Shown piece after piece: positions 5,615 to 19,045 of a DNA stretch of 64,000 nt. The position numbers and the translations under genes were made by a program. The DNA is from Pseudomonas aeruginosa PAO1 (GTDB taxonomy: Bacteria; Pseudomonadota; Gammaproteobacteria; Pseudomonadales; Pseudomonadaceae): NCBI RefSeq assembly GCF_000006765.1, contig NC_002516.2; one strand, written 5' to 3'. Position 1 is the first letter of the stretch. The number at the start of each line of letters is the position of its first letter. The notes under the pieces are model-generated. The model was not told the DNA's origin and did not search any database. It saw nothing but the letters and a program-made list of their open reading frames with translations.

Positions 5615-6319
5615 TCAGCGCGCCAGCGGCTGGAGCAGCGCGTCGAACTGCTCCAGCCGCGGGAACCGCAGGGGTACATCCTGCTCGAGATTTTCCAGCC
5701 GCGCCCGGTAGGCGCGCAGGAAGTTGCCGCGCGCTTCCTCGCTGATGTATGGCACGTGCCAGGCGACGAAGGGCTCCAGCACCTGCATGCCGACATAGGC
5801 CAGGGTGCCGCGCAGGATCGGCCGCAGCATGTCCTCCAGCGGTCCGTGGATGGCACCCTCGCCGAACATGTGCTGGCGCCCGCCCAGGGTCAGGCTGACC
5901 AGCGCCTTCTTGCCGGCCAGGCCACCCTGGTCGTAGAAGCGCTTGCCGCCATAGCAGACCCCGGACACCAGTACCCGGTCGAACCACCCCTTGAGGATCG
6001 CCGGCACCGAGAACCAGTAGATCGGAAAGTTGAGGATCAGCAGGTCGGCCCACAGCAGCTTGTCCAGCTCGGCCTGGATGTCGGCGGCCAGGCTCTGGCG
6101 CTTGACGCTCTCGCGCTGCTCCAGGGCGTACACCAGGTAGTCGGGATCGGCGCGCTCGGCGAAGTCGGCGGCACTGGCCACCGGATTCCAGTTCATCGCG
6201 TAGAGATCCGAGACCTGCACCGCGTGGCCCTGGCCTGCCAGGGTCTCGCATGCCTGGTCACAGAGCGCGCGGGTGAAGGATTGCGGTTCGTTGTGGGCGT
6301 GGACGATCAGTACGTTCAT
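5615..6319 (-). CDS. Flavodoxin-fold NAD(P)H:quinone oxidoreductase (234 aa from MNVLIVHAH)
   Basis: VHAHNEPQSF, DLYAMNWNP, FPIYWFSVPAILKGWFDRV motifs of the MdaB/NQO/KefF family. Confidence 0.9.
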   Translation of the reverse strand: MNVLIVHAHNEPQSFTRALCDQACETLAGQGHAVQVSDLYAMNWNPVASAADFAERADPDYLVYALEQRESVKRQSLAADIQAELDKLLWADLLILNFPIYWFSVPAILKGWFDRVLVSGVCYGGKRFYDQGGLAGKKALVSLTLGGRQHMFGEGAIHGPLEDMLRPILRGTLAYVGMQVLEPFVAWHVPYISEEARGNFLRAYRARLENLEQDVPLRFPRLEQFDALLQPLAR

Positions 6320-6369
6320 CGTGGTTTCCGAATCGTGGTGACCGGCCGCATCGCTCGCGGCCGAGGGGT

Positions 6370-7551
6370 TCAGGCCTGGCCGAGCAACTCGGCGGCGCAC
6401 AGCGCAATGCGCCGACAGGCTTCGCGCAGCGGTTCGGCGCCCAACACCAGGCCGAGGCGGATGTGACCGGCGGCGCTCGGGCCGAAGGCTTCGCCGGCGA
6501 GCACCGATACGCCATGGCGGTCCAGCAGGCGGTCGGCGAAGGCCTGGGCGGAAAGTCCGGTGGGACGGATGTCGACCATCACGAACATGCCGCCGTCCGG
6601 GCGCAGTGGACGCAGGCCGGGGCTGTCGGCCAGGCACTCGATTACCAGGTCGCGGCGGCGGCGGTAGGCCTCGCGCATCGCCTCCAACTCCGGCAGCGGC
6701 GCTTCCAGCGCGGTGCAGGCGGCATCCTGGATGAATTCCGGCGAGCCATAGAGCATGCACAGGGCGAGGTTCTCCAGGTGCGCGCAGAGTGCTGCGGGAC
6801 CGACCACCCAGCCGACCCGCCAGCCGGTCATGGCGTGGGATTTCGACAGGCTGTTGAGGGTCGCGGTACGGTCGGCCATCCCCGGCAGGCTGGCCGGGCT
6901 GACATGCTCGCCGTCGAACAGCAGTTCGCTGTAGACCTCGTCGGAGATCATCCACAGGTCATGGGCCATGCACAGCTCGGCCAGGGCTTCCCAGGTGGCC
7001 CGCGGCAGGCTGGCGCCGGACGGGTTGTGCGGGCTGTTCAGCGCCATCGCGCGCGTGCGCGGGGTGATCAGTGCGGCGACCTCCTCGGCCTGCACGCGGA
7101 AGCCATTCTCGGAGCGCACCGGCACCGGCACCACCCGCGCGCCACAGGCGCCGAACACCGCTTCGTAGGTGACGTACATCGGCTCGGCGACTATCACCTC
7201 GTCGCCCGGATTCAGCAGGCACTGCACCACCGCGTACAGCGCGCATTGGGCACCTGCCAGCACCACCACCTGCTCCGCGTCCACCGCCTGGCCGCTGCGC
7301 CGCCGGTGGCGCTCGGCGATGCGCTGGCGCAGGGCGCGCTTGCCGCGCACGTCGGCGTAGTGGGTGTTGCCGGCCAGCAGGCTGTCGATGGCCGCCTGGA
7401 CGATGGGCGCCGGGGTATCGAAGTCGGGGTCGCCGACCGACAGCAGGAGGATTTCCTCGCCCTGCTCGACCCGCGCCAGCGCGCGATAGTGGATGTCCCA
7501 GGCAGCGGCGCCGTCGCCGGCGATACGTTGAGTGAAGTCGGAATAGCGCAT
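6370..7551 (-). CDS. aruH: Arginine:pyruvate transaminase (class I PLP aminotransferase)
   Basis: NSPHNPSG, DEVY, SLSKSHAMTGWRVG (PLP lysine); position directly after aruI. Confidence 0.9.
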   Translation of the reverse strand: MRYSDFTQRIAGDGAAAWDIHYRALARVEQGEEILLLSVGDPDFDTPAPIVQAAIDSLLAGNTHYADVRGKRALRQRIAERHRRRSGQAVDAEQVVVLAGAQCALYAVVQCLLNPGDEVIVAEPMYVTYEAVFGACGARVVPVPVRSENGFRVQAEEVAALITPRTRAMALNSPHNPSGASLPRATWEALAELCMAHDLWMISDEVYSELLFDGEHVSPASLPGMADRTATLNSLSKSHAMTGWRVGWVVGPAALCAHLENLALCMLYGSPEFIQDAACTALEAPLPELEAMREAYRRRRDLVIECLADSPGLRPLRPDGGMFVMVDIRPTGLSAQAFADRLLDRHGVSVLAGEAFGPSAAGHIRLGLVLGAEPLREACRRIALCAAELLGQA

Positions 7552-7573
7552 GGATGCTCTCCTTGTCCGGCGG

Positions 7574-9184
7574 TCAGCGCGCGCAGGCGTGCCGCAGTTC
7601 GATCAGGGTCACGCCGGACTGCCCGAAGCCGGCGCGCAGGTCGCGCTCCAGTTCGTCCAGGTCCTGCGGCTGGCGCACCGCGCAACCGTAGGCGCGGCCC
7701 AGCAGGGCGAAGTCGGGGTTGCGCGGCAGCACGCCGACCGGCTCGATGTCCAGGCCGAGCATGTCGTCGCGGATCTGGCCGAGCGCGTCGTTGTTCCACA
7801 GTAGCACCACCAGCGGACTGTCCAGTTCCTCGCTGGCGGTGGCCAGTTCCTGCGCGGTGTAGAGGAAGCCGCCATCGCCGACCAGCACCAGGCCCGGGCG
7901 CTGCGGGGCGCCGAGCTTGGCGCCGATGCCGGCCGGCAGGCCGTAGCCGAGGGTGCCGTAGCCGGTGGGATGCAGCCAGCTGCGCGGTGCTCGGCTGGCG
8001 AACGCGTAGTTGCCGGTATAGGCCAGTTGGGTCATGTCGGTGCTGACGAACGCATCGGCCGGCAGCGCGGCGGCGATCCGGTCGAGGATCGCCTGGTGCA
8101 GCGCCTGCAGCGGCGCGTGTGCCGCGCGGATCTCCGCGCGCAGGCGCGCCACCCTCGCGGCGGCCGGCGCGGAGTCGCGGGCCTCCTGCGGCAGGCGCAC
8201 CAGCAGCGCCTCCAGGGTCTGCCGGGCATCGCCCCTGAGCGCTACGGCAGAGGGATAGAAGTCGTTGAACTTGCGCGGGTCGATATCGACGCGGATCAGT
8301 TCGCCGGACAGCGGCAGGCGTTCGCGCCAGAAGTCGGTGTCGGCCATCTCGGTGCCCACCGCCAGCACCAGGTCGGCCTCGGCGATCATCTCCCAGCCCG
8401 GCGCTACGCACAGGCTGGCCCCGGCGTTGAGCGGCGCGTCCGGCGGCAGCAGACCCTTGCCGGCGACGCTGGTGAACAGCGGCGCGGCCAGGCGCTCGCT
8501 CAGCGCGGCAAGCGCCTCGCCGGCCGCCAGCGCGCCGCCGCCGGCGATGAGCATTGGTCGCCGGGCCGCAGCCAGGCGCTCCGCCGCCGCCCGCAATGCC
8601 TCGCTGCACGGCACACCACGACCCGGGCGGCGCGCTACGGCAGCGCTCCAGTCATGGGCCACCGGCGCGGCGAGCACGTCGAGCGGGATCGAGATATGCA
8701 CCGGGCGCGGACGCTCGCTGTCGAACACCGCGTAGGCCCGGGCGATCAGTTCGGGCAGCTGTTCCGGGCTCAAGGCCAGGGCGGAGAAGGCAGTGATCGG
8801 CGCGGTCATGGCACGCTGGTCCTGGGTCTCGTGCAGGCAGCCCCAGCCCTTGCCCAGGCTGGCGCTGTGGTTGACGCTGGAAATCACCAGCAGCGGCACC
8901 GAGTCGGCGTAGGCCTGGCCGATGGCGGTGGCGACGTTGGTCACGCCCGGCCCGGTGATGACGAAGCACACTCCCGGCTTGCCGCTGACCCGCGCATAAC
9001 CGTCGGCCATGAAGCCGGCGCCCTGCTCGTGGCGGGTCAGCACGTGGCGGATGCCGCTGCCCGGAAGTCCGCGGTACAGCTCCAGGGTATGCACGCCGGG
9101 GATGCCGAAAACGGTATCCACGCCGTAGTTGGCCAGCAAGCGGACCAGGGCCTGGCCGGCGGTGAGGGTCTTCTGTGGTTGCAT
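7574..9184 (-). CDS. aruI: 2-ketoarginine decarboxylase (TPP-dependent), 536 aa from MQPQKT
   Basis: FGIPGVH, RHEQGAGFMADGYAR, GPGVTN, GDGGF...NND TPP-binding motif; GAGGA RBS before ATG 9184. Confidence 0.88.
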   Translation of the reverse strand: MQPQKTLTAGQALVRLLANYGVDTVFGIPGVHTLELYRGLPGSGIRHVLTRHEQGAGFMADGYARVSGKPGVCFVITGPGVTNVATAIGQAYADSVPLLVISSVNHSASLGKGWGCLHETQDQRAMTAPITAFSALALSPEQLPELIARAYAVFDSERPRPVHISIPLDVLAAPVAHDWSAAVARRPGRGVPCSEALRAAAERLAAARRPMLIAGGGALAAGEALAALSERLAAPLFTSVAGKGLLPPDAPLNAGASLCVAPGWEMIAEADLVLAVGTEMADTDFWRERLPLSGELIRVDIDPRKFNDFYPSAVALRGDARQTLEALLVRLPQEARDSAPAAARVARLRAEIRAAHAPLQALHQAILDRIAAALPADAFVSTDMTQLAYTGNYAFASRAPRSWLHPTGYGTLGYGLPAGIGAKLGAPQRPGLVLVGDGGFLYTAQELATASEELDSPLVVLLWNNDALGQIRDDMLGLDIEPVGVLPRNPDFALLGRAYGCAVRQPQDLDELERDLRAGFGQSGVTLIELRHACAR

Positions 9185-9245
9185 GGGCAATATCCTCGTC
9201 CAGTTCGGCGACCATCGGAGTCGCCGTTCGCGCCGCAGCGCTCTT

Positions 9246-9275
9246 GCTCCCATTCCCACAAGCGGGAGGGGGAGC
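9246..9275. repeat. REP-like imperfect palindrome, copy 1 (aru operon junction)
   Basis: GCTCCCATTCCC-acaagc-GGGAGGGGGAGC; related to the element at 11415-11443. Confidence 0.5.
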
Positions 9276-9294
9276 CGTCGTGTCCCCCCGGCCT

Positions 9295-11385
9295 TCAGCC
9301 ATTGGCCAGCCGGATCAACGCATCCACCGCCAGCGCTCCCTCGGCATCCGCCAGCAACGGATTGACGTCCAGCTCCAGCAAGCGCTCGGCATGTTCGCAG
9401 GCGAATTCGGCGACCGCGCGGATCGCCGCCACCAGGGCCTCCATGCACACTGCCGGGCGACCGCGGAAGCCGCTGAGCAACGGCGCGCTGCGCAGGCTCA
9501 GCAGGGCATCGCGGATCGCCGCGTCGGTGGTTGGCAGCAGCAGGCTGCGACTGTCGCGCAGCAGCTCCACGAGTATCCCGCCGGCACCGATCACCAATGC
9601 CAGGCCGAAGCCCTCCTCGCGCTTGACCCCGACGATCAGCTCGGCCAGCGGCGCGCCAGCCATGCGCTCCAATAAAACACGCTCGAAGACCAGTTGCGGC
9701 GCGTGCCGGGCCAGGCTTTCGCGCATGTCGAACAATGCCGCCTCCAACGCCGCTTCGTTGCGTAGGCCGAGCGCCACGCCACCGGCCTCGGTCTTGTGCG
9801 GCAGTGCGGCGCTGACCGCCTTGAGCACCAGCGGGAAGCCGAGGTCGAGGGCCGCTTCGCGGGCCTGGCCGGGGGTGCTCAGCACCCCCTGGGGCAGTGG
9901 CAGGCCGAAGGGTTTCAGCGCCTGCTTGGATTGCCACTCGTCGAGCAGGTAGCCGTCGCCCGCCAGCGGCCCTGGGCAGATCGGCACCAACGCCGCCTCA
10001 CCGCGCTCCAGCAGCGCCGCGCGGCGCTGGCGGTAGCGGGCGATCCGTCCCCAGGCGGCGAGACCATCCTCGACGCCCTGCAGCGCGGCGACGCCCTCGC
10101 CGTGCAACAGCTCGCGGGCCCGGGCCGGCAGCAGTTCCGGGAACGCCGAGGCGATGAAGCCGACTTTGCCGTGGCGCTTCAGCGCGGCGCAGTAGCGTTG
10201 CAGAAGCAGGTCGCACTGCGGCCGCTCGCCGGTTTCCTCGCCCGGATAGTCGAGCACCAGCAGGGCGGCGTCGGCAGGGCTGCGCAAAGCGCTGTCGAGC
10301 ATTTCCTCCAGGGCCGCGGCATCGCCCCAGATGGCGGTGGTGAAGTCCAGCGGGTTGGCGATGTTGGCGTAGTCGGGCAGCACCCCGGCCAGTTCGTCGC
10401 GCTGTCCGGCGTCGAAAGACGGCAACCCCAGGCCGTTGCGCTCGGCGTAATCGGCGATCAACCCGGCGTCGCCGCCGGAACAGGCCAGCGCGACCAGGCT
10501 CGGCCCGCCAGGCAGGTGGCCGCAGGCGGCGGCCTTGAGGGTTTCGACGAAGCTCACCGGGCCGCTCACGCGGATCACCCCGAGGCGCTCGAACAGGCTG
10601 TCGTAGAGCGCGTCGGAACCGGCCAGGGAACTGGTGTGGCTGAGCGCGAGGGCCGCGCCGATCTTCGACACCCCGGTCTTCAGGGCGATCACCGGCACGC
10701 CTTTCTGCAACGCCTTGTAGGCTGCGCGGGCGAACCCCGGGACGTTCTTCAGCCCTTCCAGATGCAGGCCGATGGCAGTCACCCGCGGCTCGTCGAGCAG
10801 CACGTCCATCAGCTCGGCGATGCCCAGCTGCGCCTGGTTGCCCACCGATGCCATATAGGCCACCGGCAGCGAACGGTCGCTCATCGACAGGTTGTAGGCG
10901 AAGTTGCCACTCTGCGTCAGCACCGCGACGCCCCGCTCCACCTGCCGACCGCCATGTGCCACCGGCCATAGCGCGGCGCCGTGCAGGTAGTCGAGCAAGC
11001 CGTAGCAGTTCGGGCCGAGCAGCGCCATTTCGCCGGCGGCGGCCAGCAGCCGGCGTTGCACGGCCAGGCCCTGTTCGCCGGTTTCGGCGAAGCCGGAGGC
11101 ATAGCAGATCGCCCCGCCGGCGCCTTTGGCGGCGAGCGCGGCGACCGCGTCGAGGGTCAGTTCGCGGTTGGTGGCGACGAACGCCGCGTCCGGGCCGCAC
11201 GGCAGGTCGGCGACGCTGGCCACGCAGGGTACGCCTTCGAGTTCGGCGTGCTGCGGATTGACCAGCCACAACTGGCCGGCGAAACCGCCTTCGGCACAGC
11301 GTTTCAGGGCACGCGCCATGCCACGGCCGCCAATGAAGGCGAGATGCCTGGGTGCCAGCAGGCGCTTGAGGTTTTCACGATTCAT
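9295..11385 (-). CDS. ADP-forming acyl-CoA synthetase (CoA-binding plus ATP-grasp domains)
   Basis: LLGPNCYG, TQSG, SVGNQA, SHTSSLAG phospho-His motif, NPLD, PLVLK..HKTEAGGV, ELDVNPL; no C-terminal GNAT domain, so a ligase rather than a PatZ-type acetyltransferase. Confidence 0.85.
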   Translation of the reverse strand: MNRENLKRLLAPRHLAFIGGRGMARALKRCAEGGFAGQLWLVNPQHAELEGVPCVASVADLPCGPDAAFVATNRELTLDAVAALAAKGAGGAICYASGFAETGEQGLAVQRRLLAAAGEMALLGPNCYGLLDYLHGAALWPVAHGGRQVERGVAVLTQSGNFAYNLSMSDRSLPVAYMASVGNQAQLGIAELMDVLLDEPRVTAIGLHLEGLKNVPGFARAAYKALQKGVPVIALKTGVSKIGAALALSHTSSLAGSDALYDSLFERLGVIRVSGPVSFVETLKAAACGHLPGGPSLVALACSGGDAGLIADYAERNGLGLPSFDAGQRDELAGVLPDYANIANPLDFTTAIWGDAAALEEMLDSALRSPADAALLVLDYPGEETGERPQCDLLLQRYCAALKRHGKVGFIASAFPELLPARARELLHGEGVAALQGVEDGLAAWGRIARYRQRRAALLERGEAALVPICPGPLAGDGYLLDEWQSKQALKPFGLPLPQGVLSTPGQAREAALDLGFPLVLKAVSAALPHKTEAGGVALGLRNEAALEAALFDMRESLARHAPQLVFERVLLERMAGAPLAELIVGVKREEGFGLALVIGAGGILVELLRDSRSLLLPTTDAAIRDALLSLRSAPLLSGFRGRPAVCMEALVAAIRAVAEFACEHAERLLELDVNPLLADAEGALAVDALIRLANG

Positions 11386-11414
11386 GTCGGTTCTCGATTC
11401 GGAACATGGCAGCC

Positions 11415-11443
11415 TTCCCCTCTCCCCTGGAGGAAGAGGGGAG
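11415..11443. repeat. REP-like imperfect palindrome, copy 2 (aru operon junction)
   Basis: TTCCCCTCTCCC-ctgga-GGAAGAGGGGAG. Confidence 0.5.
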
Positions 11444-11451
11444 CCAGGACT

Positions 11452-12621
11452 TCAACGCAGCAACGGCCGCAGCAGTTCGCGGGAAACGATGTGCCGCTGG
11501 ATTTCCGAAGTGCCCTCCCAGATCCGTTCGATCCGCGCGTTGCGCCAGATGCGCTCGACCGGTCCTTCATCCATCAGGCCCATGCCGCCGAAGATCTGCA
11601 CCGCTTCGTCGGCGACCTTGCCGAGGGTCTCGCTGGCGAACAGCTTGGCCATGCCGGCCTCGCCGTCGGTCATGGTGCCCTGGTCCATCTTCCAGGCGGT
11701 GTGCAGGGTCATCAGCTCGGCGGCACGGATCTGCGTGGCCATGTCGGCGAGCTTGAAGGAAACGCCCTGGTAGCTGCCGATCGGCTGGCCGAACTGCTTG
11801 CGATCGGCCGCCCAGCGCAGCGACAGGTCGAGGGCGCGCTGGGCCTGGCCGACGCAGTTGGCGGCGACCATCACCCGTCCGGCGGTGAGCCAGGCGTTGG
11901 CCACTTCCCAGCCCTTGCCGACCTCGCCGAGTACCTTGGAGGCCGGCACCCGGCAATCGTCGAAGAAGATCTCGTAAGTGTGGTAGCCACGGTTGCTCAC
12001 GCATTTCGGCCCGCGGCGCACGGTCATCCCGGGCGTGCCCTTGTCCACCAGGAAGGCGGTCACCGCGTTGCGCTTGCGGCCGTTGTGCTCGTAGCTGTCG
12101 GTGACAGCGAAGACGATGGCGAAGTCGGCGTGCCCGGCGTGGCTGATGAAGTGCTTGCTACCGTTGATCACGAAGGCGTCGCCGTCGCGCACCGCGCGGG
12201 TCTTGATCGAATTGGCGTCGGAGCCGGCGCCCGGCTCGGTGAGGGCGAAGCAATCGGTCTTTTCGCCCTGCACGCAGGGCAACAGGTAGTCGCCGAGCTG
12301 TTCTCCGGTGCAGGCCATGAGGATCTTCGAGGGCCGCGCGACGAATACGTGGAGGGCCCAGGAGACCTTCGACAGCTCGCGTTCGACCAGCGCCTGGGAC
12401 AGGTAGTCGAGGCCGCCGCCGCCCACTTCCTCGGGCATGTTGAAGGCATAGAAACCGGCGGCGATGGCCTTGCCGCGAATCTGTGCGGCCAGCTCCGGCG
12501 ACACCGCGTCGGCGCGGTCGATATCGTCCTCGTGGGGCAGCAGTTCCTTCTCGACGAAGCTGCGCACCGCCTCGACCAGCATGTCCTGTTCCTGGGTCAG
12601 CCTGAAATCCATGGGAATCAC
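11452..12621 (-). CDS. Acyl-CoA dehydrogenase (start may be MDFRL at 12612)
   Basis: FALTEPGAGSDA, NGSKHFI, RKQFGQPI, QIFGGMG, RIWEGTSEIQR with catalytic Glu. Confidence 0.93.
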   Translation of the reverse strand: MIPMDFRLTQEQDMLVEAVRSFVEKELLPHEDDIDRADAVSPELAAQIRGKAIAAGFYAFNMPEEVGGGGLDYLSQALVERELSKVSWALHVFVARPSKILMACTGEQLGDYLLPCVQGEKTDCFALTEPGAGSDANSIKTRAVRDGDAFVINGSKHFISHAGHADFAIVFAVTDSYEHNGRKRNAVTAFLVDKGTPGMTVRRGPKCVSNRGYHTYEIFFDDCRVPASKVLGEVGKGWEVANAWLTAGRVMVAANCVGQAQRALDLSLRWAADRKQFGQPIGSYQGVSFKLADMATQIRAAELMTLHTAWKMDQGTMTDGEAGMAKLFASETLGKVADEAVQIFGGMGLMDEGPVERIWRNARIERIWEGTSEIQRHIVSRELLRPLLR

Positions 12622-12632
12622 CTGCTCGGCGC

Positions 12633-13424
12633 CTAGCGCCCGCTGAATTGAGGGGAACGTTTCTCGGCCACGGCGCGCAGCGCCTCGGCGGCATCCTCGC
12701 TGCGCCCGCAGAGCAGCCCGGCGGCCTGCTCGGCCCGCAACTGCTCGGCCAGCGAGCGCCCGGCGCCGTCGCGCAGCAGGCGCTTGGTCTGGGCGAAGGC
12801 AAAGGTCGGACCGCTGGCGAGACGCGCAGCGAAGGCGCCGACCGCCTCAACCAGGTGCTCGTCGGCGACCACCTCGCCGACCAGTCCGGCGCCCAGGGCT
12901 CGCTCCGCGCTCCAGGCTTCGTCGAGGAACAGCAGGCGCTTGGCCGCCTCGCTGCCGAGCAGCCGTGGCAGATGCCAACTGGCGCCGGCGTCCGGGCAGT
13001 AGGCCATGCCGGTGTAGCCGGCCTTGAAGCGCGCCGAGGCGGCGGCGATGCGGAAATCGCAGCACAGCGCCAGGTCCATGCCAGCGCCCACGGCGCTGCC
13101 GTTGACGGCGGCGACTGTGGGTTTGTCGAGGGCGTGCAGGCGCCCCATCAGGGCGTGGGCGGCCTCGGTCCAGCCATAGCTTTCCAGCTCGCCACGGGCT
13201 TCAGCCGCCGCCCATTCGGCGAGATCGGCCCCGGCGCAGAAGCTGCGTCCGCTGCCGCCGAGCACCACAGCGCGCACTGCCGGGTCGCGCTCGCAGGCAT
13301 CGAGTCGGACGTGCAGGGCCTCCAGGGTGGGGATATCCAGTGCATTGCGCTGTTGCGGACGGTTCAGGACGAGCCAGGCGATCCCGGCTTCGACCCGCGT
13401 CTGCAATGGGGAAAGGTCAGTCAT
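12633..13424 (-). CDS. Enoyl-CoA hydratase/isomerase (crotonase fold)
   Basis: LNRPQQRNAL, FCAGADL, AAVNGSAVGAG, CDFRIA, PDAGASW. Confidence 0.92.
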   Translation of the reverse strand: MTDLSPLQTRVEAGIAWLVLNRPQQRNALDIPTLEALHVRLDACERDPAVRAVVLGGSGRSFCAGADLAEWAAAEARGELESYGWTEAAHALMGRLHALDKPTVAAVNGSAVGAGMDLALCCDFRIAAASARFKAGYTGMAYCPDAGASWHLPRLLGSEAAKRLLFLDEAWSAERALGAGLVGEVVADEHLVEAVGAFAARLASGPTFAFAQTKRLLRDGAGRSLAEQLRAEQAAGLLCGRSEDAAEALRAVAEKRSPQFSGR

Positions 13425-13629
13425 GCGGCCCTCGTTCTTATTGTTGGTTGATGGCGATCGCGGCTTTCAGGTAATACTAAACACTCGTTCAACAAGACCA
13501 CAATCCACCCATTCGGGTGTATGTAACGGCCCTGCGGCAGGCGCAAAGCCACACGCCATGCGATCCGCCGAAAAGCGGCGGAGGCCCGCGCGAGCCGGCT
13601 GTTACAACTTCGAACAAACCAACCAGGCG

Positions 13630-13662
13630 AAAACGAAAACGCCCGCCGGATGCGGCGGGCGT
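13630..13662 (-). terminator. Rho-independent terminator after the permease gene
   Basis: Minus strand ACGCCCGCCG-catc-CGGCGGGCGT followed by TTTCGTTTT. Confidence 0.75.
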
Positions 13663-13682
13663 CGGGTCCTGCGAATGGCCGT

Positions 13683-15095
13683 TCAGCCGGCCCGTCCCAG
13701 GGCGGGGTCGCCCAGTCCCTGCGGCTGCCGGCGACGAACCACGTAATAGGCCAGGTAGCAGGCGGCGATGAAGCCGAAGCCCCAGTACAAGGACGGCCGC
13801 TGGGTGGGATCGAGGGCGAGGAAGACGAACAGCGAGCAGCACACGGCGATGCAGGCCAGCGGCACCAGCGGGAACAGCGGCGCGGCATATTTCAGCTCGG
13901 CGACCGTGCCGCCGCTGGCCATGTGCTCGCGGCGGAAGCGGTATTGGGCGTAGGCGATGACGATCCAGGTGACGGTGCCGGACATCCCGCTCACCGCCAT
14001 CAGCACCATGAACAGGGTGTCGGCGGCGACCACGCTGGTCAGCAACGAGAGCAGGGCGAAGCACAGGGTGATCAGCAACGCGTAGAGCGGCACGCCGCGC
14101 GCGCTGAGCTTCGACAGGCCGCGCGGGGCCATGCCGGACCTGGACATCGCCCAGAGGATCCGCGTCGAGGCGTACAGGCCCGAGTTGCCTACCGAGAGGA
14201 TGGCGGTGAGGATGACGAAGTTCATCAGGTCCGCCGCGTAGGGAATCCCGACCATGTCGAACACCTGCACGAACGGGCTTTCCATCAGCCCGGCCTGTTG
14301 CCAGGGAATGATGGCGGAAAGCACGACGATGGCCAGCACGTAGAAGATCAGTACGCGGAACACCACGTTGCGCACCGCCCGCGGGATGCTCTTCTCCGGT
14401 CGCTCGGTCTCGCCGGCGGCGACGCCCATGATCTCGCAACCCTGGAAGGCATAGACCACCGTCATCATCACCGCGAACACCGCCGACAGGCCGTTGGGGA
14501 ACAGCCGCTCGCCGACCAGGTTGGAGAACATCGGCGCCGGCGCACCGCTCTTCAGTTCGATACCGCCGAAGATCACCAGCCCCCCGACCACGATGAACAC
14601 CAGGATCGCCGCCACCTTGATCCCGGCGAACCAGTACTCGGCCTCGCCGAAAGCGCGGGTCGCCAGGGCATTGAGGGAGAACAGCACGACCACGAAGAAA
14701 CCCGACCATAGCCACACGGGCACCTCCGGGAACCAGCGGGTCATGAGCATCCCGGCCGCGGTGAATTCCAGGCCTACCGTGGAGGCCCAGCTCATCCAGT
14801 AGACCCAGCCGATCATGAAGCCAGTCGCCGGGCCGATGAAACGCGTCGCGTGGGCCTGGAACGAACCGGAGACCGGCATCTGCACCGACAGCTCGCCGAG
14901 GCAGACCATCACCAGGTACATCAGCACCCCGGCCACCAGGTAGGCCAGCACCGCGCCGGCCGGGCCGCCCTGGTTGATGGTCACGCCGGAGCCCATGAAC
15001 AGCCCGGTGCCGATCACCCCGCCGAGGGACAGCATGAAGATGTGGCGGCTCGCCAGGGCCCGGGTGAGTTGCAGCCTTTCCTTGCCGTCAGCCAT
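13683..15095 (-). CDS. APC-family amino acid permease (LysP/RocE-like)
   Basis: LASRHIFMLSLGGVIGTGLFMGSG, LGELSV, FGEAEYWF, YAFQGCE; about 12 TM segments; GGAGG RBS. Confidence 0.92.
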   Translation of the reverse strand: MADGKERLQLTRALASRHIFMLSLGGVIGTGLFMGSGVTINQGGPAGAVLAYLVAGVLMYLVMVCLGELSVQMPVSGSFQAHATRFIGPATGFMIGWVYWMSWASTVGLEFTAAGMLMTRWFPEVPVWLWSGFFVVVLFSLNALATRAFGEAEYWFAGIKVAAILVFIVVGGLVIFGGIELKSGAPAPMFSNLVGERLFPNGLSAVFAVMMTVVYAFQGCEIMGVAAGETERPEKSIPRAVRNVVFRVLIFYVLAIVVLSAIIPWQQAGLMESPFVQVFDMVGIPYAADLMNFVILTAILSVGNSGLYASTRILWAMSRSGMAPRGLSKLSARGVPLYALLITLCFALLSLLTSVVAADTLFMVLMAVSGMSGTVTWIVIAYAQYRFRREHMASGGTVAELKYAAPLFPLVPLACIAVCCSLFVFLALDPTQRPSLYWGFGFIAACYLAYYVVRRRQPQGLGDPALGRAG

Positions 15096-15278: not shown

Positions 15279-17531
15279 TCAACCGGCCGCTGAGTCGGCT
15301 TCGCCGAGGAAGCCGGCGCGGCGCAGGGCTTCGGCGCCGTCGCGGCGCAGGCTACCCAGGCGTGCGCCCCAGGCCCGCGGGTCGACCCCGGCCGCGCCCA
15401 GGGCCTCGCGCTCCAGCTCGCCCAGGCCGGCGCCGAGCGCCACCAGGCCCATGGAGTGGCAGCTTCCGGACAGGCGATGGGCGATGTTCGCCGCCTCGGC
15501 CAGGTCCGCCTGGTCCAGGGCTTCGGCCAGCAGCGGCAACTGCTCGTCCAGGCTTCCCAGCAGGTTGCCCAGCAGTCCGGCGAGCTTGTGCCGCCCCAGC
15601 AGGCGGCGGTGGGTCTCGAGCATTTGCCGGTCCAGCGCGGCGTCCACCGCAAGCGCAGGCACGCTGGTGCCGACCTCGCCCAGCGCGCGGCGCAGCTCGT
15701 CCATCCGCAGGGGCTTGCCGAGCACCCCCTGCATGCCCGCGGCGAAGTACCGACGCACCATGTCCGGCTGGATGCTGGCGGTGAAGGCGAAGATCGGCGT
15801 GGCGCGGTTCAGGCCGTCGAGCTGCCGGCGAATCCCGGCGCAAAGCTCGAGGCCAGCCATCCCCGGCAGGTGCATGTCCAGCAGGATCAGGTCGAAGCGC
15901 CGCTGCCGGCACAACGCCAGGGCCGGCCCCGCGTCCTCGGCCAGCATCACCCGGTGGCCGTCCCGCTCGAGCAGGCCCTGGGCCACCTCGCGGTTGAGCG
16001 CCACGTCCTCCACCAGCAGCACCTCCAGCGCAGACACCGATGCCGCCGGCGGCGTCGCGCCGGACAAGCTCGCCAGCGCCAGCTCGATCTCGAACCAGAA
16101 CGTGCTGCCCTGGCCGACCCGGCTTTCCACGCCGATCCGCCCGCCCAGCGCTTCCACCAGCCGCTTGCTGATCGCCAGGCCCAGGCCGGTTCCGCCGTAA
16201 CGGCGGGTCACGGCGTCGCCGCCCTGGGTGAAGCGTTCGAAGATGCGTTCGCGCATTTCCTCGGGAATGCCGATTCCATCGTCCGCGACGCTCAGCCGCA
16301 GGCGCTCGCTTCCTGCGCTGCGCGCCAGCCGCTCGACGCGAACGCGCACCTCGCCGGCCTCGGTGAACTTCACCGCGTTGCCCAGCAGGTTGGTCAACAC
16401 CTGGCGCAGGAACTGCTCGGCGCCGCGATGGCCGTCATGAACCTGTGGGTCCAGCCACAGGTCCAGCCGTGTGGCGTTCTCCCGCGCCCGTGGTTCGAGC
16501 AGGGTGAGGACGTCCTCGAGCAGGCTCCGCAAGGAAAAGTCCACCGCTTCCGGCACATCCGGCGCTTCCTCCAGCCGGGCGAAGTGGAGGACCTCGTTGA
16601 GGATCGCCAGCAGTCCCTCCCCCGCTGTCGCCAGTGCCCGCAGGCGCTGGCGGTCACGCTCGCCGAGCGATGCCTCGCGCAGCAGCTCGGCCATGCCCAG
16701 GATGCCGTTCAGCGGGGTACGGATCTCATGGCTCATGGTCGCGAGAAAACGGCTCTTGGCGCGGTCGGCGGCTTCCGCCTGGTCCTTCGCCCGGCGCAGG
16801 CTGGCGGTGCGCCGCTCGACCTGCCGACGCAACTCGTCGCGATCGGCATCGCGCCGGCGGCGGTCGGTGCGCAGGGCCTGGCGCATGTCTTCCAGGGCGG
16901 CGGCGACGGCGTCGATCTCATCGCGCTCGCGGTCCACCTTGTCCAGTCGCAGCGGCTGTTGCAGGTCGCCTTCGGCGATATGCCCGGCGAACTCGGACAT
17001 GCGCCACAGATGGCGAGTGACCAGGCTGTGGAACAGCCAACTGAGGGCCACCGCCAGGCCGCAAAGGAAACTGCCCATCCACAAGAGGCTGGCCAGGCCG
17101 CCGGAAACCAGCCGGCGATAGACCGCCGCCAGGTCGATGGCGATCTCCAGCTCGCCCAGTTGCCGACGCTCGCCCCCCGGCGGCTGGTAGCTCAAGGGAA
17201 AGCGCTCGACCCGCAGCATGCCGCGTGGACGCTGGTCGCCCTGCAACAGGTTGAAGTCGGCGCTTTGCAGGCTGACACGGGCGATGTCGGGGAAATCCCC
17301 GAGGCCGCGCAACTGCACGTTCAACTGCTCCTGGTTGAGATCCCACAGGCTGCGCTCGAAGCTGGCCAGGTAGCCGCTGCGGATCAGTTCCAGGCGCGCC
17401 TCGATCTCGCGCATTTCGCGGCGGTATTCGAAGAACAGCTGCACGGCGCCGGCGAGGACGGTGAAACACAGGCTGAACAGCAGCACCCGCCACAGCAGGC
17501 GCCGCGCCAACACTCCGCCGTGGCCGCTCAC
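15279..17531 (-). CDS. aruS: Unorthodox hybrid sensor kinase (2 TM, HAMP, HisKA, HATPase, REC, HPt), 750 aa from GTG 17531
   Basis: MSHEIRTPLNG H-box, NLLGNAVKFT, DDGIGI, GGTGLGLAI, receiver LLVED/LLDMHLPG/KP, HPt IAHRLSGS; GTG start overlaps the TGA of the upstream SBP gene. Confidence 0.85.
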   Translation of the reverse strand: MSGHGGVLARRLLWRVLLFSLCFTVLAGAVQLFFEYRREMREIEARLELIRSGYLASFERSLWDLNQEQLNVQLRGLGDFPDIARVSLQSADFNLLQGDQRPRGMLRVERFPLSYQPPGGERRQLGELEIAIDLAAVYRRLVSGGLASLLWMGSFLCGLAVALSWLFHSLVTRHLWRMSEFAGHIAEGDLQQPLRLDKVDRERDEIDAVAAALEDMRQALRTDRRRRDADRDELRRQVERRTASLRRAKDQAEAADRAKSRFLATMSHEIRTPLNGILGMAELLREASLGERDRQRLRALATAGEGLLAILNEVLHFARLEEAPDVPEAVDFSLRSLLEDVLTLLEPRARENATRLDLWLDPQVHDGHRGAEQFLRQVLTNLLGNAVKFTEAGEVRVRVERLARSAGSERLRLSVADDGIGIPEEMRERIFERFTQGGDAVTRRYGGTGLGLAISKRLVEALGGRIGVESRVGQGSTFWFEIELALASLSGATPPAASVSALEVLLVEDVALNREVAQGLLERDGHRVMLAEDAGPALALCRQRRFDLILLDMHLPGMAGLELCAGIRRQLDGLNRATPIFAFTASIQPDMVRRYFAAGMQGVLGKPLRMDELRRALGEVGTSVPALAVDAALDRQMLETHRRLLGRHKLAGLLGNLLGSLDEQLPLLAEALDQADLAEAANIAHRLSGSCHSMGLVALGAGLGELEREALGAAGVDPRAWGARLGSLRRDGAEALRRAGFLGEADSAAG

Positions 17532-18304
17532 CAGGCGTCCGCGCGGTTGCCGGCGAGGCGCCGATAGTCGCGCACGCTGTCGTCCAGCCAACGCTGGATG
17601 CTGCCGTCGTCGCGATAGCCACGCAGGGCCCGGTCGATCTCGTCCATCTTCGCCGCCAGCGGCGAGTGCCGCGAGACCGCCACCCGCAGGTAGTCCACCG
17701 TCAGCGGTTCGGGCAGCGCACGGATGTTCTCGCCGCCGGCCAGGCGCTCGGCGAACAGCGTGCCGGTGCGTCGTTCGTGGGCGATGTAGTCGATGCGCTG
17801 GCGCACCAGCTTGCCGAAGTTCTGTCGGCTGTCGGAAACCCATTCGACGTTGCCGTGGCGGCCGACGAAGCGGTCGAAGTCCGCCCCGTAGCTTTCGCCG
17901 AACAACAGCCCGCCGCGATAGCCGGCGAGGTCGCCGAGGGATTGGATGCGCACCGGCCGCTGGCGGTTGTAGAAGATCGCCACCTCCTCGCGCAGCACCG
18001 GCTCGGCGGAAAACGCCAGGTCGCGATCGCGCGCGGGCGTGCGGTAGGCCAGTATCAGGTCGACCCGTCCGGCGGCGGCGTCGAGCAGGCAGCGCCGCCA
18101 GTTGCCCAGCACCACCACCTCGACCCGGTAGCCCAGCGCGCCGAACAGCCGCTTCACCAGCTCCGGCGCCAGCCCCCGGACCTGCTGGCCGTCGCTCCAG
18201 GAAATCGGCGGGTATACCGGATAGTCGCAATAGCGGATGGTCTCCGCAGCCTGTGCCAGGCCGCCCAGCAGCCATCCGCAGAGCGCCAGCCAGCAGGCCT
18301 GCAT
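17528..18304 (-). CDS. Periplasmic substrate-binding protein (family 3, amino-acid type)
   Basis: Signal peptide ending AQA-AE, DYPVYPP, NWRRCL...GRVDL, RIDY; no adjacent ABC permease or ATPase. Confidence 0.85.
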   Translation of the reverse strand: MQACWLALCGWLLGGLAQAAETIRYCDYPVYPPISWSDGQQVRGLAPELVKRLFGALGYRVEVVVLGNWRRCLLDAAAGRVDLILAYRTPARDRDLAFSAEPVLREEVAIFYNRQRPVRIQSLGDLAGYRGGLLFGESYGADFDRFVGRHGNVEWVSDSRQNFGKLVRQRIDYIAHERRTGTLFAERLAGGENIRALPEPLTVDYLRVAVSRHSPLAAKMDEIDRALRGYRDDGSIQRWLDDSVRDYRRLAGNRADAW

Positions 18305-18307
18305 GGC

Positions 18308-19045
18308 TCAGGCGTCGCTGGCCGCGGCGGTGAACAGGTAGCCGGCGCCGTGGATGGTGATGATCAGTTGCGGTTCGGCCGGGTCGTCGCGCAGCTTGCG
18401 ACGCAGGCGGCCGACCAGCACGTCGATGGAGCGATCGCTGGGCAGCCACTCGCGGTTGCGGATCTGGTCCATCAACTGGTCGCGGCTCAGGGTATGCCCG
18501 CTGTTGCGCAGGAAAGCGCCGAGCAATTGGAATTCGCCATGGGTGAGCAGGGTTTCGTTGCCCGCGTGGTCGATCAGGCGGCGCCGGTCGGCGTCCAGCA
18601 GCCAGTCGCCGAACTGCCTGAGGGCCTGCCGGGCGGGGCCGGCGCTGGCCTGGGCATGGCGCACCCGGCGGATCAGGTTCTTCGCCCGCGACACCAGTTC
18701 GCGCGGGTTCAGCGGCTTGATCACGTAATCGTCGGCGCCGCACTCCAGGCCGACGATGCGATCGATCTCGTCGTTGCGCCCGGTGATCAGGATGATCCCC
18801 ACCTCGGAGCGCACCCGCAGCTCGCGGGTCAGGGTCAGGCCGTCCTTGCCGGGCAGGCGGATGTCCAGCAGCACCAGCTCGACCGGCTGGCCGAGATGGG
18901 CGCACTCGGCAAGGCAGGCTTCCGCCTGCTCGGCGTTGCCGGCGCAGAGGACGTCATAGCCCTCCTCGCCGAGATAGGCCTGGAGAAGCTCACGAATCAC
19001 CGGGTCGTCGTCGACCACCAATACGCGCGGAACCATCGCCATCAC
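18308..19045 (-). CDS. aruR: OmpR/TorR-family response regulator
   Basis: VVDDDP, LVLLDIRLPG (phospho-Asp), GADDYVIKP, wHTH RSIDVLVGRLRRKL...ITIHGAGY. Confidence 0.9.
   Translation of the reverse strand: MMAMVPRVLVVDDDPVIRELLQAYLGEEGYDVLCAGNAEQAEACLAECAHLGQPVELVLLDIRLPGKDGLTLTRELRVRSEVGIILITGRNDEIDRIVGLECGADDYVIKPLNPRELVSRAKNLIRRVRHAQASAGPARQALRQFGDWLLDADRRRLIDHAGNETLLTHGEFQLLGAFLRNSGHTLSRDQLMDQIRNREWLPSDRSIDVLVGRLRRKLRDDPAEPQLIITIHGAGYLFTAAASDA

Follow-up and report, generated by a model that had tools for sequence, protein, structure and literature searches.

An acyl-CoA module inherited with aruIH in Pseudomonas: kinship with gamma-butyrobetaine clusters and a proposed CoA branch for 4-guanidinobutyrate

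Introduction

Why do enzymes of coenzyme A (CoA) chemistry stand in line with the arginine transaminase genes aruIH of Pseudomonas aeruginosa PAO1? Six genes at positions 5615-13424 of a 64,000-nt stretch of contig NC_002516.2 (the window; G+C about 68%) raise this question. They all lie on the minus strand, are intact and contain zero internal stops. From first to last they encode a crotonase-fold protein (PA4980), an acyl-CoA dehydrogenase (PA4979), a fused acyl-CoA synthetase (PA4978), the decarboxylase AruI, the transaminase AruH and a quinone reductase (PA4975). The gene set is already annotated and PA4980 has been crystallised. Quinone reductase activity has been reported for PA4975, with its function in the operon called unclear (PMC4051601). 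The function of AruH goes back to Yang & Lu 2007, as relayed by papers citing that study. PA4975 and PA4978-PA4980 are conserved and co-inherited partners of aruIH in a well-studied bacterium, and they have gone without an assigned role since 2007; a published guess that tied them to cis-2-decenoic acid has since been disproved. We compared these genes with their relatives across Pseudomonas and beyond. Our leading reading, held tentatively, is that the module activates and desaturates 4-guanidinobutyrate, an isostere of gamma-butyrobetaine, in an incomplete form of beta-oxidation.

Results

Conservation of the CoA genes with aruIH

A synthetase orthologue (84-100% identity) was present in all but one of 34 Pseudomonas species genomes. 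Among the 30 loci listed from these genomes, 29 had the synthetase flanked by dehydrogenase and crotonase on one side and by aruI on the other. Of 27 further Pseudomonas loci, drawn from a collection of named genomes, 26 also kept the order crotonase-dehydrogenase-synthetase-aruI, giving 55 of 57 loci overall. This arrangement is conserved far beyond chance. The most conserved protein of the run is the PA4979 dehydrogenase, with 88-93% identity across the Pseudomonas loci.

To describe inheritance at the family level we used an even sample of 151 genomes, in which true AruI orthologues were defined by 74% identity or more. The synthetase orthologue occurred in 27 genomes and the true AruI orthologue in 28, and the two stood side by side in 26. 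True AruI orthologues are therefore found almost exclusively next to the synthetase. The exceptions were two genomes with AruI only, one of them with an in-frame stop, and one genome with the synthetase only. Of note, the interrupted gene (in genome G473; 77% identity, in-frame TGA) belongs to a genome from which the synthetase orthologue is absent, and this looks like decay of the unit.

The spacer between synthetase and aruI measures 58-290 nt in the aeruginosa group. In 19 loci of the putida/fluorescens type it is -13 to +9 nt, which leaves aruI no room for a promoter of its own in the gap. Along the PAO1 run the intergenic gaps, from PA4980 to PA4975, are 11 (or 20, with PA4979 beginning at its ATG), 66, 110, 22 and 50 nt. 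The description of the run as tightly packed in the initial annotation is thus apt for most gaps, the 110-nt gap between synthetase and aruI being too wide for it; that annotation was right about the six genes, their positions and their strand. No terminator-like site was called on the minus strand within the run, and no sigma-70 consensus was found 5' of PA4980. As far as the comparative data show, the run is one unit: gene order, spacers and co-inheritance all support the proposal that the CoA genes belong with aruIH.

Descent of the ligase and the dehydrogenase

We characterised the ligase and the dehydrogenase by their residues and closest relatives. In PA4978, His250 and His530 are invariant, and the best solved relatives are DddX (7CM9) and a 4-hydroxybutyrate-CoA ligase (8WZU). 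PA4979, which more probably begins with the ATG at 12612, carries its catalytic Glu369 within a W-E-G motif and is closest among solved structures to short-chain/butyryl-CoA dehydrogenases.

Closer relatives were found among genomes. In an even sample of 401 gammaproteobacterial genomes (the class sample), 16 contained a close synthetase homologue (38-52% identity), and in most of these loci the synthetase was adjoined by a dehydrogenase of the same family (54-61% identity) and a crotonase. The surroundings included BKACE in 7 loci and L-carnitine dehydrogenase in 11, together with a GbdR-like regulator and a CaiD-like hydratase; aruH or aruI was never found beside the synthetase in the loci fetched. 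About 43 of 80 loci from named genomes also showed a carnitine context, and these span Alpha- and Gammaproteobacteria, Actinomycetota and one Chloroflexota genome. Identity to the enzymes of carnitine-type clusters is 37-52% for PA4978 and 51-63% for PA4979.

Maximum-likelihood trees of both proteins recovered Pseudomonas as a single clade (support 100 for the dehydrogenase and 1.0 for the synthetase) with Burkholderia as its sister, and the pair is nested among carnitine-linked sequences. Given this nesting, the CoA genes linked to aru are an offshoot of a module that ancestrally acted on a C4 acid carrying a cationic head group. In S. meliloti, BcoAB makes gamma-butyrobetainyl-CoA from ATP and CoA; we provisionally take BcoA/B to be members of PA4978's ligase family, from gene context and from what Bazire 2019 reportedly describes. 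No other Bco-type synthetase was found in the searched Pseudomonas genomes, where the second match reached just 32-33% identity.

We also compared residues between groups. At position 132 of the synthetase, in the G-P-N-C-Y-G loop, the Pseudomonas clade alone has Asp; everywhere else the residue is Asn without exception. The dehydrogenase has 27 group-specific positions, three of which fall on the pocket helix by alignment. The Asn132 change is suggestive, but reading these residues as guanidinium recognition would need a ligand-bound structure and was set aside; the change in the ligase is also missing in Burkholderia.

The crotonase PA4980

The third CoA enzyme departs from this pattern. PA4980 is identical in protein sequence to PDB 5YLO, and its next best solved relatives are PaaG isomerases (6SL9, 3HRX and 4FZW_C; E about 1e-48 to 1e-42). 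All NCBIfam matches fall under their cut-offs, and identity to CaiD/BcoD-like hydratases is about 30%. A residue census found Asp117, Tyr137 and Asp145 together with Ala66 in 31 of 31 PA4980-type sequences. Carnitine-linked crotonases have Glu, Glu and Asp at the equivalent positions in 51-52 of 53 sequences and, with Trp66 included, in 49-52 of 53. Asp117 and Tyr137 set PA4980 apart from canonical two-Glu enoyl-CoA hydratases, whose two catalytic glutamates are Glu144 and Glu164 in the rat enzyme. Asp145, invariant across the PA4980 type, aligns with the catalytic Asp136 of Thermus PaaG. The Pseudomonas branch has exchanged a two-Glu hydratase for a PaaG-like crotonase and gained the quinone reductase.

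A variant in Rhizobiales (L110 6290-12106, L091 and L106) places two crotonases, one CaiD-like and one PA4980-like, next to the dehydrogenase and synthetase, which suggests that the PA4980 type has a reaction other than ordinary hydration. This variant also contains a BetI-type TetR gene, a PotABCD-type transporter and a gene resembling nitronate monooxygenase. Three points appear to be undescribed in the literature searched: that the genes descend from a gamma-butyrobetaine CoA module, that the crotonase was replaced, and that the quinone reductase is associated with the CoA genes.

These observations bear on the wording of the initial annotation, according to which the module beta-oxidises its substrate with dehydrogenase and thiolase steps coming from elsewhere. 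The term is too strong, because the ligase is not of the FadD type and the crotonase lacks the second Glu (Tyr137 in 31 of 31). Neither a 3-hydroxyacyl-CoA dehydrogenase nor a thiolase was found between 5615 and 13424 or in the flanks to 19045.

They also bear on two lipid readings. The genes could be an auxiliary set for activating and oxidising C4-C6 fatty acids, chemically unlinked to arginine. The solved relatives of PA4979 would suit that role, and in P. putida PP_3726 mutants are moderately defective on hexanoate and butyrate. We consider it improbable: PP_3724 deletion leaves growth on acetate unaffected, neither PP_3724 nor PP_3725 has a reported fatty-acid phenotype, the phylogeny puts ligase and dehydrogenase among betaine-type clusters, the crotonase is without the hydratase Glu, and the CoA genes are co-inherited with aruI. 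The second reading assigns the genes to the synthesis or sensing of cis-2-decenoic acid, a signal for biofilm dispersal; the initial annotation mentioned a published suggestion of a link to this signalling. It was indeed published, as a proposal from microarray data and database interaction networks (PMC4412052), but in a later systematic deletion study PA4980 deletion had no effect on dispersal, and DspI/DspII have been shown to be the synthases (PMC12923603). As PA4980 also lacks the two-Glu pair, we give this reading next to no credence.

Retention of the ancestral substrate

The kinship described above allows another account, in which the genes kept their ancestral job: gamma-butyrobetaine, or another betaine, would be activated for an unlinked carnitine operon, and adjacency to aruIH would be historical or regulatory only. 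The nearest homologues of the CoA enzymes do sit in carnitine clusters, L-carnitine dehydrogenase scores above its NCBIfam cut-off in 24 of 27 module-bearing genomes, and the searched Pseudomonas genomes offer no second Bco-type synthetase for the task. The dehydrogenase count does not discriminate, because the gene is equally common in 29 genomes without the module. Several features tell against retention. The CaiD-like two-Glu hydratase is replaced by the Asp/Tyr/Asp crotonase throughout the census, AruRS is found nearby instead of a GbdR/CdhR-type regulator, and in the putida group the stop/start overlap with aruI makes one operon. We regard this account as unlikely.

Carnitine dehydrogenase lies 26-50 kb from the module in several non-aeruginosa species and 479 kb away in a P. 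aeruginosa-like genome. The proximity of 26-50 kb is probably regional synteny.

The quinone reductase and variant loci

We used loci with altered gene order to ask which genes the quinone reductase accompanies. In P. turukhanskensis (L075 4448-12807), from whose locus aruIH is absent, the start of the quinone reductase gene overlaps the synthetase stop. In another species (L053) it directly follows the synthetase, ahead of a TetR gene and aruI. These positions indicate that the gene travels with the CoA genes and not with aruIH. PA4975 thus probably belongs with PA4980-PA4979-PA4978, as part of a Pseudomonas/Burkholderia offshoot of the Bco-type module.

Ahead of the P. turukhanskensis module lie genes for an SBP_bac_8 protein, a class-III (omega-) aminotransferase and a LuxR-type regulator. 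This set may be another way of providing the aldehyde or acid otherwise made via AruH/AruI, with agmatine as one conceivable source. The Burkholderia module, with a PA4980-type crotonase, acyl-CoA dehydrogenase and acyl-CoA synthetase, is surrounded by an AruI-like gene, a quinone reductase gene, an aldehyde dehydrogenase gene and a polyamine-type ABC transporter. The Labrys locus has the order AruH-AruI-acyl-CoA dehydrogenase-acyl-CoA synthetase-CaiD-like hydratase, with AruH/AruI homologues at 43-45% identity, and its dehydrogenase belongs in the tree to a different, carnitine-type clade. Judging from that placement, AruH/AruI homologues joined a CoA module independently in Labrys.

AruI and its paralogue

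The aru genes themselves were identified by several features: a decarboxylase model above its cut-off, an adjacent class I aminotransferase gene, and AruS and AruR encoded upstream (15279-19045). No NCBIfam model reached its cut-off on aruH. Elsewhere in the genome there is an AruI paralogue (50% identity) that matches the 2-ketoarginine decarboxylase model NF005712 with 882 bits, vs 807 for AruI. The model's name may suit this paralogue no less than it suits the characterised AruI. In a P. aeruginosa-like genome (G001:C1:3963259-3969221) the paralogue lies 3.5 kb from a GbuA-like arginase-family gene, and in the family sample many genera likewise have the paralogue and a GbuA-like ureohydrolase at a distance of 2-5 kb. 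This arrangement suggests that the guanidinobutyrase (GbuA) route has a decarboxylase of its own and that AruI is tied to the CoA genes.

In the class sample, a Bco-type synthetase was present in 11 of the 14 genomes with an AruI-family decarboxylase, out of 16 genomes with the synthetase overall, without linkage between the two gene sets. The genomes are interrelated, so that their independence is overstated in this count. An AruH-like neighbour was seen in 7 of 12 decarboxylase loci listed (e.g., L131-L138). The co-occurrence may reflect shared ecology, or a functional tie in which transamination and decarboxylation of cationic amino acids feed a CoA module.

Upstream neighbours

The features of the run and of its upstream flank are given in Table 1. 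The permease PA4981 has its own transcription unit, and its type is a conserved upstream neighbour, present in 20 of 27 related Pseudomonas loci. Its best NCBIfam matches are of the MmuP and LysP types, under their cut-offs; the top family match was the S-methylmethionine permease MmuP (517 bits vs a cut-off of 716) rather than an arginine transporter. Permease, ligase and dehydrogenase match best MmuP, DddX and acryloyl-CoA reductase, respectively, which prompted us to consider a route from S-methylmethionine via dimethylsulfoniopropionate (DMSP) to acryloyl-CoA. We rejected it as a leading reading because the scores lie far under the family cut-offs and Bco-type homologues are much closer.

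AruR is conserved at 79-87% identity in 20 related loci. With the aruS start at the GTG at 17531, Gln31 is the first residue of the published clone of its ligand-binding domain. Between the two regulator genes lies an SBP_bac_3 gene, labelled "substrate-binding periplasmic protein" in NCBI genomes, which starts 3 nt past the aruR stop and whose own stop overlaps the aruS GTG start as GTGA. A 2024 study of binding proteins near AruS examined PA4985 and not this gene. Given its position and that choice, its product stands out as a candidate co-sensor for AruS, the CHASE5 kinase.

Table 1. Genes and other features of the run and its upstream flank, with positions in the window
Feature	Positions	Strand	Details
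PA4980, crotonase-fold protein, PaaG-like type	12633-13424	minus	263 aa, PF00378; first gene of the run
PA4979, acyl-CoA dehydrogenase	11452-12621	minus	four Acyl-CoA_dh domains (Pfam)
PA4978, fused alpha/beta ADP(NDP)-forming acyl-CoA synthetase	9295-11385	minus	696 aa; CoA_binding_2 + Succ_CoA_lig + ATP-grasp_5
Spacer PA4978/aruI, 110 nt	9185-9294	minus	G/C hairpins, T-run absent
aruI, thiamine diphosphate-dependent 2-ketoarginine (5-guanidino-2-oxopentanoate) decarboxylase	7574-9184	minus	NF005712, 807 bits vs cut-off 500
aruH, arginine:pyruvate transaminase, class I/II aminotransferase	6370-7551	minus	PF00155, 252.8 bits
PA4975, NAD(P)H:quinone oxidoreductase, Flavodoxin_2, NQO2-like	5615-6319	minus	PF02525, 178.7 bits; last gene of the run
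Non-coding stretch 5' of PA4980, presumed promoter/regulatory region	13425-13637	minus	between permease terminator and PA4980 start
Strong intrinsic terminator of permease gene	13638-13663	minus	11-bp stem, 9 G-C pairs, then T-run
PA4981, APC-family amino-acid permease, own transcription unit	13683-15095	minus	PF00324, 418 bits
aruS, sensor kinase	15279-17531	minus	CHASE5-HAMP-HisKA-HATPase-REC-Hpt (Pfam)
SBP_bac_3 periplasmic binding-protein gene	17528-18304	minus	258 aa, PF00497; between aruR and aruS
aruR, response regulator	18308-19045	minus	REC + winged helix (Pfam), OmpR-type

Discussion

We favour 4-guanidinobutyrate as the substrate for two reasons: it shares with gamma-butyrobetaine a four-carbon acid chain bearing a cationic head at C4, and it arises via AruH and AruI. 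The independent linkage in Labrys, the neighbourhood of the module in Burkholderia and the separate decarboxylase near GbuA-like genes also speak for it. In the sequence of reactions that we propose, AruH and AruI convert arginine to 4-guanidinobutanal and the unlinked aldehyde dehydrogenase KauB oxidises this to 4-guanidinobutyrate, two steps established by others. PA4978 would then form 4-guanidinobutanoyl-CoA at the expense of ATP, releasing ADP and Pi, and PA4979 would desaturate the product to the 2-enoyl-CoA. PA4980 might then isomerise this enoyl-CoA by a proton shift, hydrate it in an atypical way or close a ring. Such a CoA-dependent branch would run parallel to the GbuA route and stop short of a full beta-oxidation spiral. 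The postulated intermediate has a precedent: PMC4737276 describes 4-guanidinobutanoyl-CoA as a real and stable metabolite, a starter of Streptomyces polyketide synthases that is preferred over the cyclisation-prone 4-aminobutanoyl-CoA.

Several observations weigh against this assignment. The residue comparisons of ligase and dehydrogenase revealed no guanidinium-binding site, and the change of Asn132 to Asp is absent from Burkholderia. P. turukhanskensis keeps the module and the quinone reductase without aruIH, next to the class-III aminotransferase gene. PA4985, a nearby binding protein, binds 4-aminobutyrate (GABA) and 5-aminovalerate and not arginine. A P. putida fitness study gives arginine phenotypes for aruH, alr, aruI, kauB and guanidinobutyrase and leaves PP_3724-3726 unmentioned, and the hexanoate and butyrate defects of PP_3726 mutants hint at plain acyl-CoA activity or polarity. 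Public RNA reads neither show nor refute co-transcription in P. aeruginosa: one raw public run of RNA reads gave a depth of about 1-9 on both strands, and the Logan contigs from RNA libraries span tens of kb uninterrupted and carry no transcript structure. Finally, use of 4-guanidinobutyrate by PAO1 is reported, by Jann in 1988 and by Nakada & Itoh in 2002, to need GbuA. A CoA route would accordingly be auxiliary at best, or lead to a different product.

The initial annotation had proposed an omega-guanidino or omega-amino acid as substrate. Its broader idea gained ground, in that an omega-cationic short acid of the guanidino type is the most plausible substrate given nearest relatives in gamma-butyrobetaine/carnitine clusters. 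Its worked example fared less well. In that example, homoarginine-derived 5-guanidinovalerate is beta-oxidised to 3-guanidinopropionate for the guanidinopropionase GpuA. AruH has a broad amino-donor specificity, as reported in the 2007 work of Yang & Lu, P. aeruginosa has GpuA, and the example would account for a source of 3-guanidinopropionate. The co-occurrence check suggested at the time found a GpuA orthologue (83% identity or more) in just 14 of the 27 genomes of the family sample that carry the module; within the second large genus the count was 2 of 11. GpuA is therefore no required partner. The crotonase is non-canonical, the unit is without a dehydrogenase or thiolase for a complete cycle, and the homologous enzymes act on a C4 acid. 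We consider this C5 route a poor candidate.

The other option raised, 5-aminovalerate, belongs to a reading with omega-amino acids as substrates, namely GABA or 5-aminovalerate, which AruH/AruI might for instance supply from lysine. In its favour, Burkholderia, P. turukhanskensis and the Rhizobiales variant have SBP_bac_8 binding proteins alongside the module, the ligands of PA4985 are of this kind, and the P. putida operon contains a Lys/Arg racemase. Both acids are chemically disfavoured, because omega-aminoacyl-CoAs such as 4-aminobutanoyl-CoA cyclise readily, which explains nature's use of the guanidino form (PMC4737276), and CoA-free transaminase routes for GABA and 5-aminovalerate already exist. 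We judge this reading very unlikely.

Returning to 4-guanidinobutyrate, a wider proposal would be that Pseudomonas and a few other proteobacteria have a previously unrecognised CoA-dependent route for arginine and 4-guanidinobutyrate, evolved from a gamma-butyrobetaine-to-carnitine module, in which the non-canonical crotonase and the NQO2-like flavoprotein give an unmapped product, with AruI dedicated to this route and its paralogue serving GbuA. Such a product might be, for instance, a carnitine analogue bearing a guanidino group, a cyclic guanidine or, following a shift of the double bond, free guanidine. As a whole this proposal is doubtful. Confirmation of the 4-guanidinobutyrate reading would add a branch to arginine catabolism, provide a case of a betaine pathway re-tooled for a guanidino compound, and correct the family-model annotation of the two 2-ketoarginine decarboxylase paralogues. 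The tie to gamma-butyrobetaine narrows the substrates to a short list with 4-guanidinobutyrate first, and it predicts that the third enzyme is no ordinary hydratase and that the quinone reductase is part of the CoA set.

Comparison with known systems

PA4978 is of the ADP-forming acyl-CoA synthetase (ACD) type, unlike the AMP-forming FadD-type ligase of canonical beta-oxidation. Within the ACD family its best solved match is DddX, the ATP-dependent DMSP CoA-ligase/lyase (7CM9; 222 bits, full length), which acts on a small cationic (sulfonium) acid. DddX is much more distant from PA4978 than the Bco-type homologues are, and its gene context differs. PA4980 resembles PaaG, the 1,2-epoxyphenylacetyl-CoA/delta3-delta2-enoyl-CoA isomerase, in keeping the Asp of the P-D-x-G motif and in having no Glu at the second hydratase position. 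It differs in having Asp at the first hydratase position, where PaaG has Ser, in scoring 187 bits against TIGR02280 (cut-off 345), and in the absence of paa genes nearby.

Three systems share parts of the proposed chemistry. The CaiABCD enzymes of E. coli also dehydrogenate and hydrate a C4 betaine at the CoA level, in the anaerobic Cai cycle of carnitine, crotonobetaine and gamma-butyrobetaine, but that system relies on a CoA transferase together with a ligase of the AMP-forming type. The CaiD and CaiA models match the carnitine-linked homologues and, more weakly, PA4979, with all scores under the cut-offs. In Streptomyces, the starter supply for marginolactones and arginoketides uses an AMP-forming ligase. 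This biosynthetic route runs via arginine monooxygenase and an amidase, without a dehydrogenase or crotonase step; like the branch proposed here, it takes arginine-derived 4-guanidinobutyrate to a CoA thioester (PMC4737276). The arginine transaminase (ATA) pathway of AruH, AruI, KauB and GbuA shares aruH and aruI with the run and has AruRS encoded upstream; as published, it needs no CoA ester and gives no role to PA4975 or PA4978-PA4980.

The closest counterpart is the Bco pathway of S. meliloti and strain HK4, which leads from gamma-butyrobetaine to L-carnitinyl-CoA through the ligase BcoA/B, the dehydrogenase BcoC and the hydratase BcoD. Both systems place a fused ADP-forming synthetase beside an acyl-CoA dehydrogenase and a crotonase-fold gene. 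The ligase and dehydrogenase of the Pseudomonas module are phylogenetic members of the clade linked to BKACE and carnitine dehydrogenase, and the Bco substrate combines a C4 acid chain with a cationic head. No BKACE, carnitine dehydrogenase or GbdR/CdhR-type regulator was found adjacent to the module in the Pseudomonas loci. Where Bco-type crotonases have Glu/Glu/Asp, PA4980 has Asp/Tyr/Asp and no Trp66, and the Pseudomonas module, unlike Bco, is linked to aruIH, AruRS and an NQO2-like reductase.

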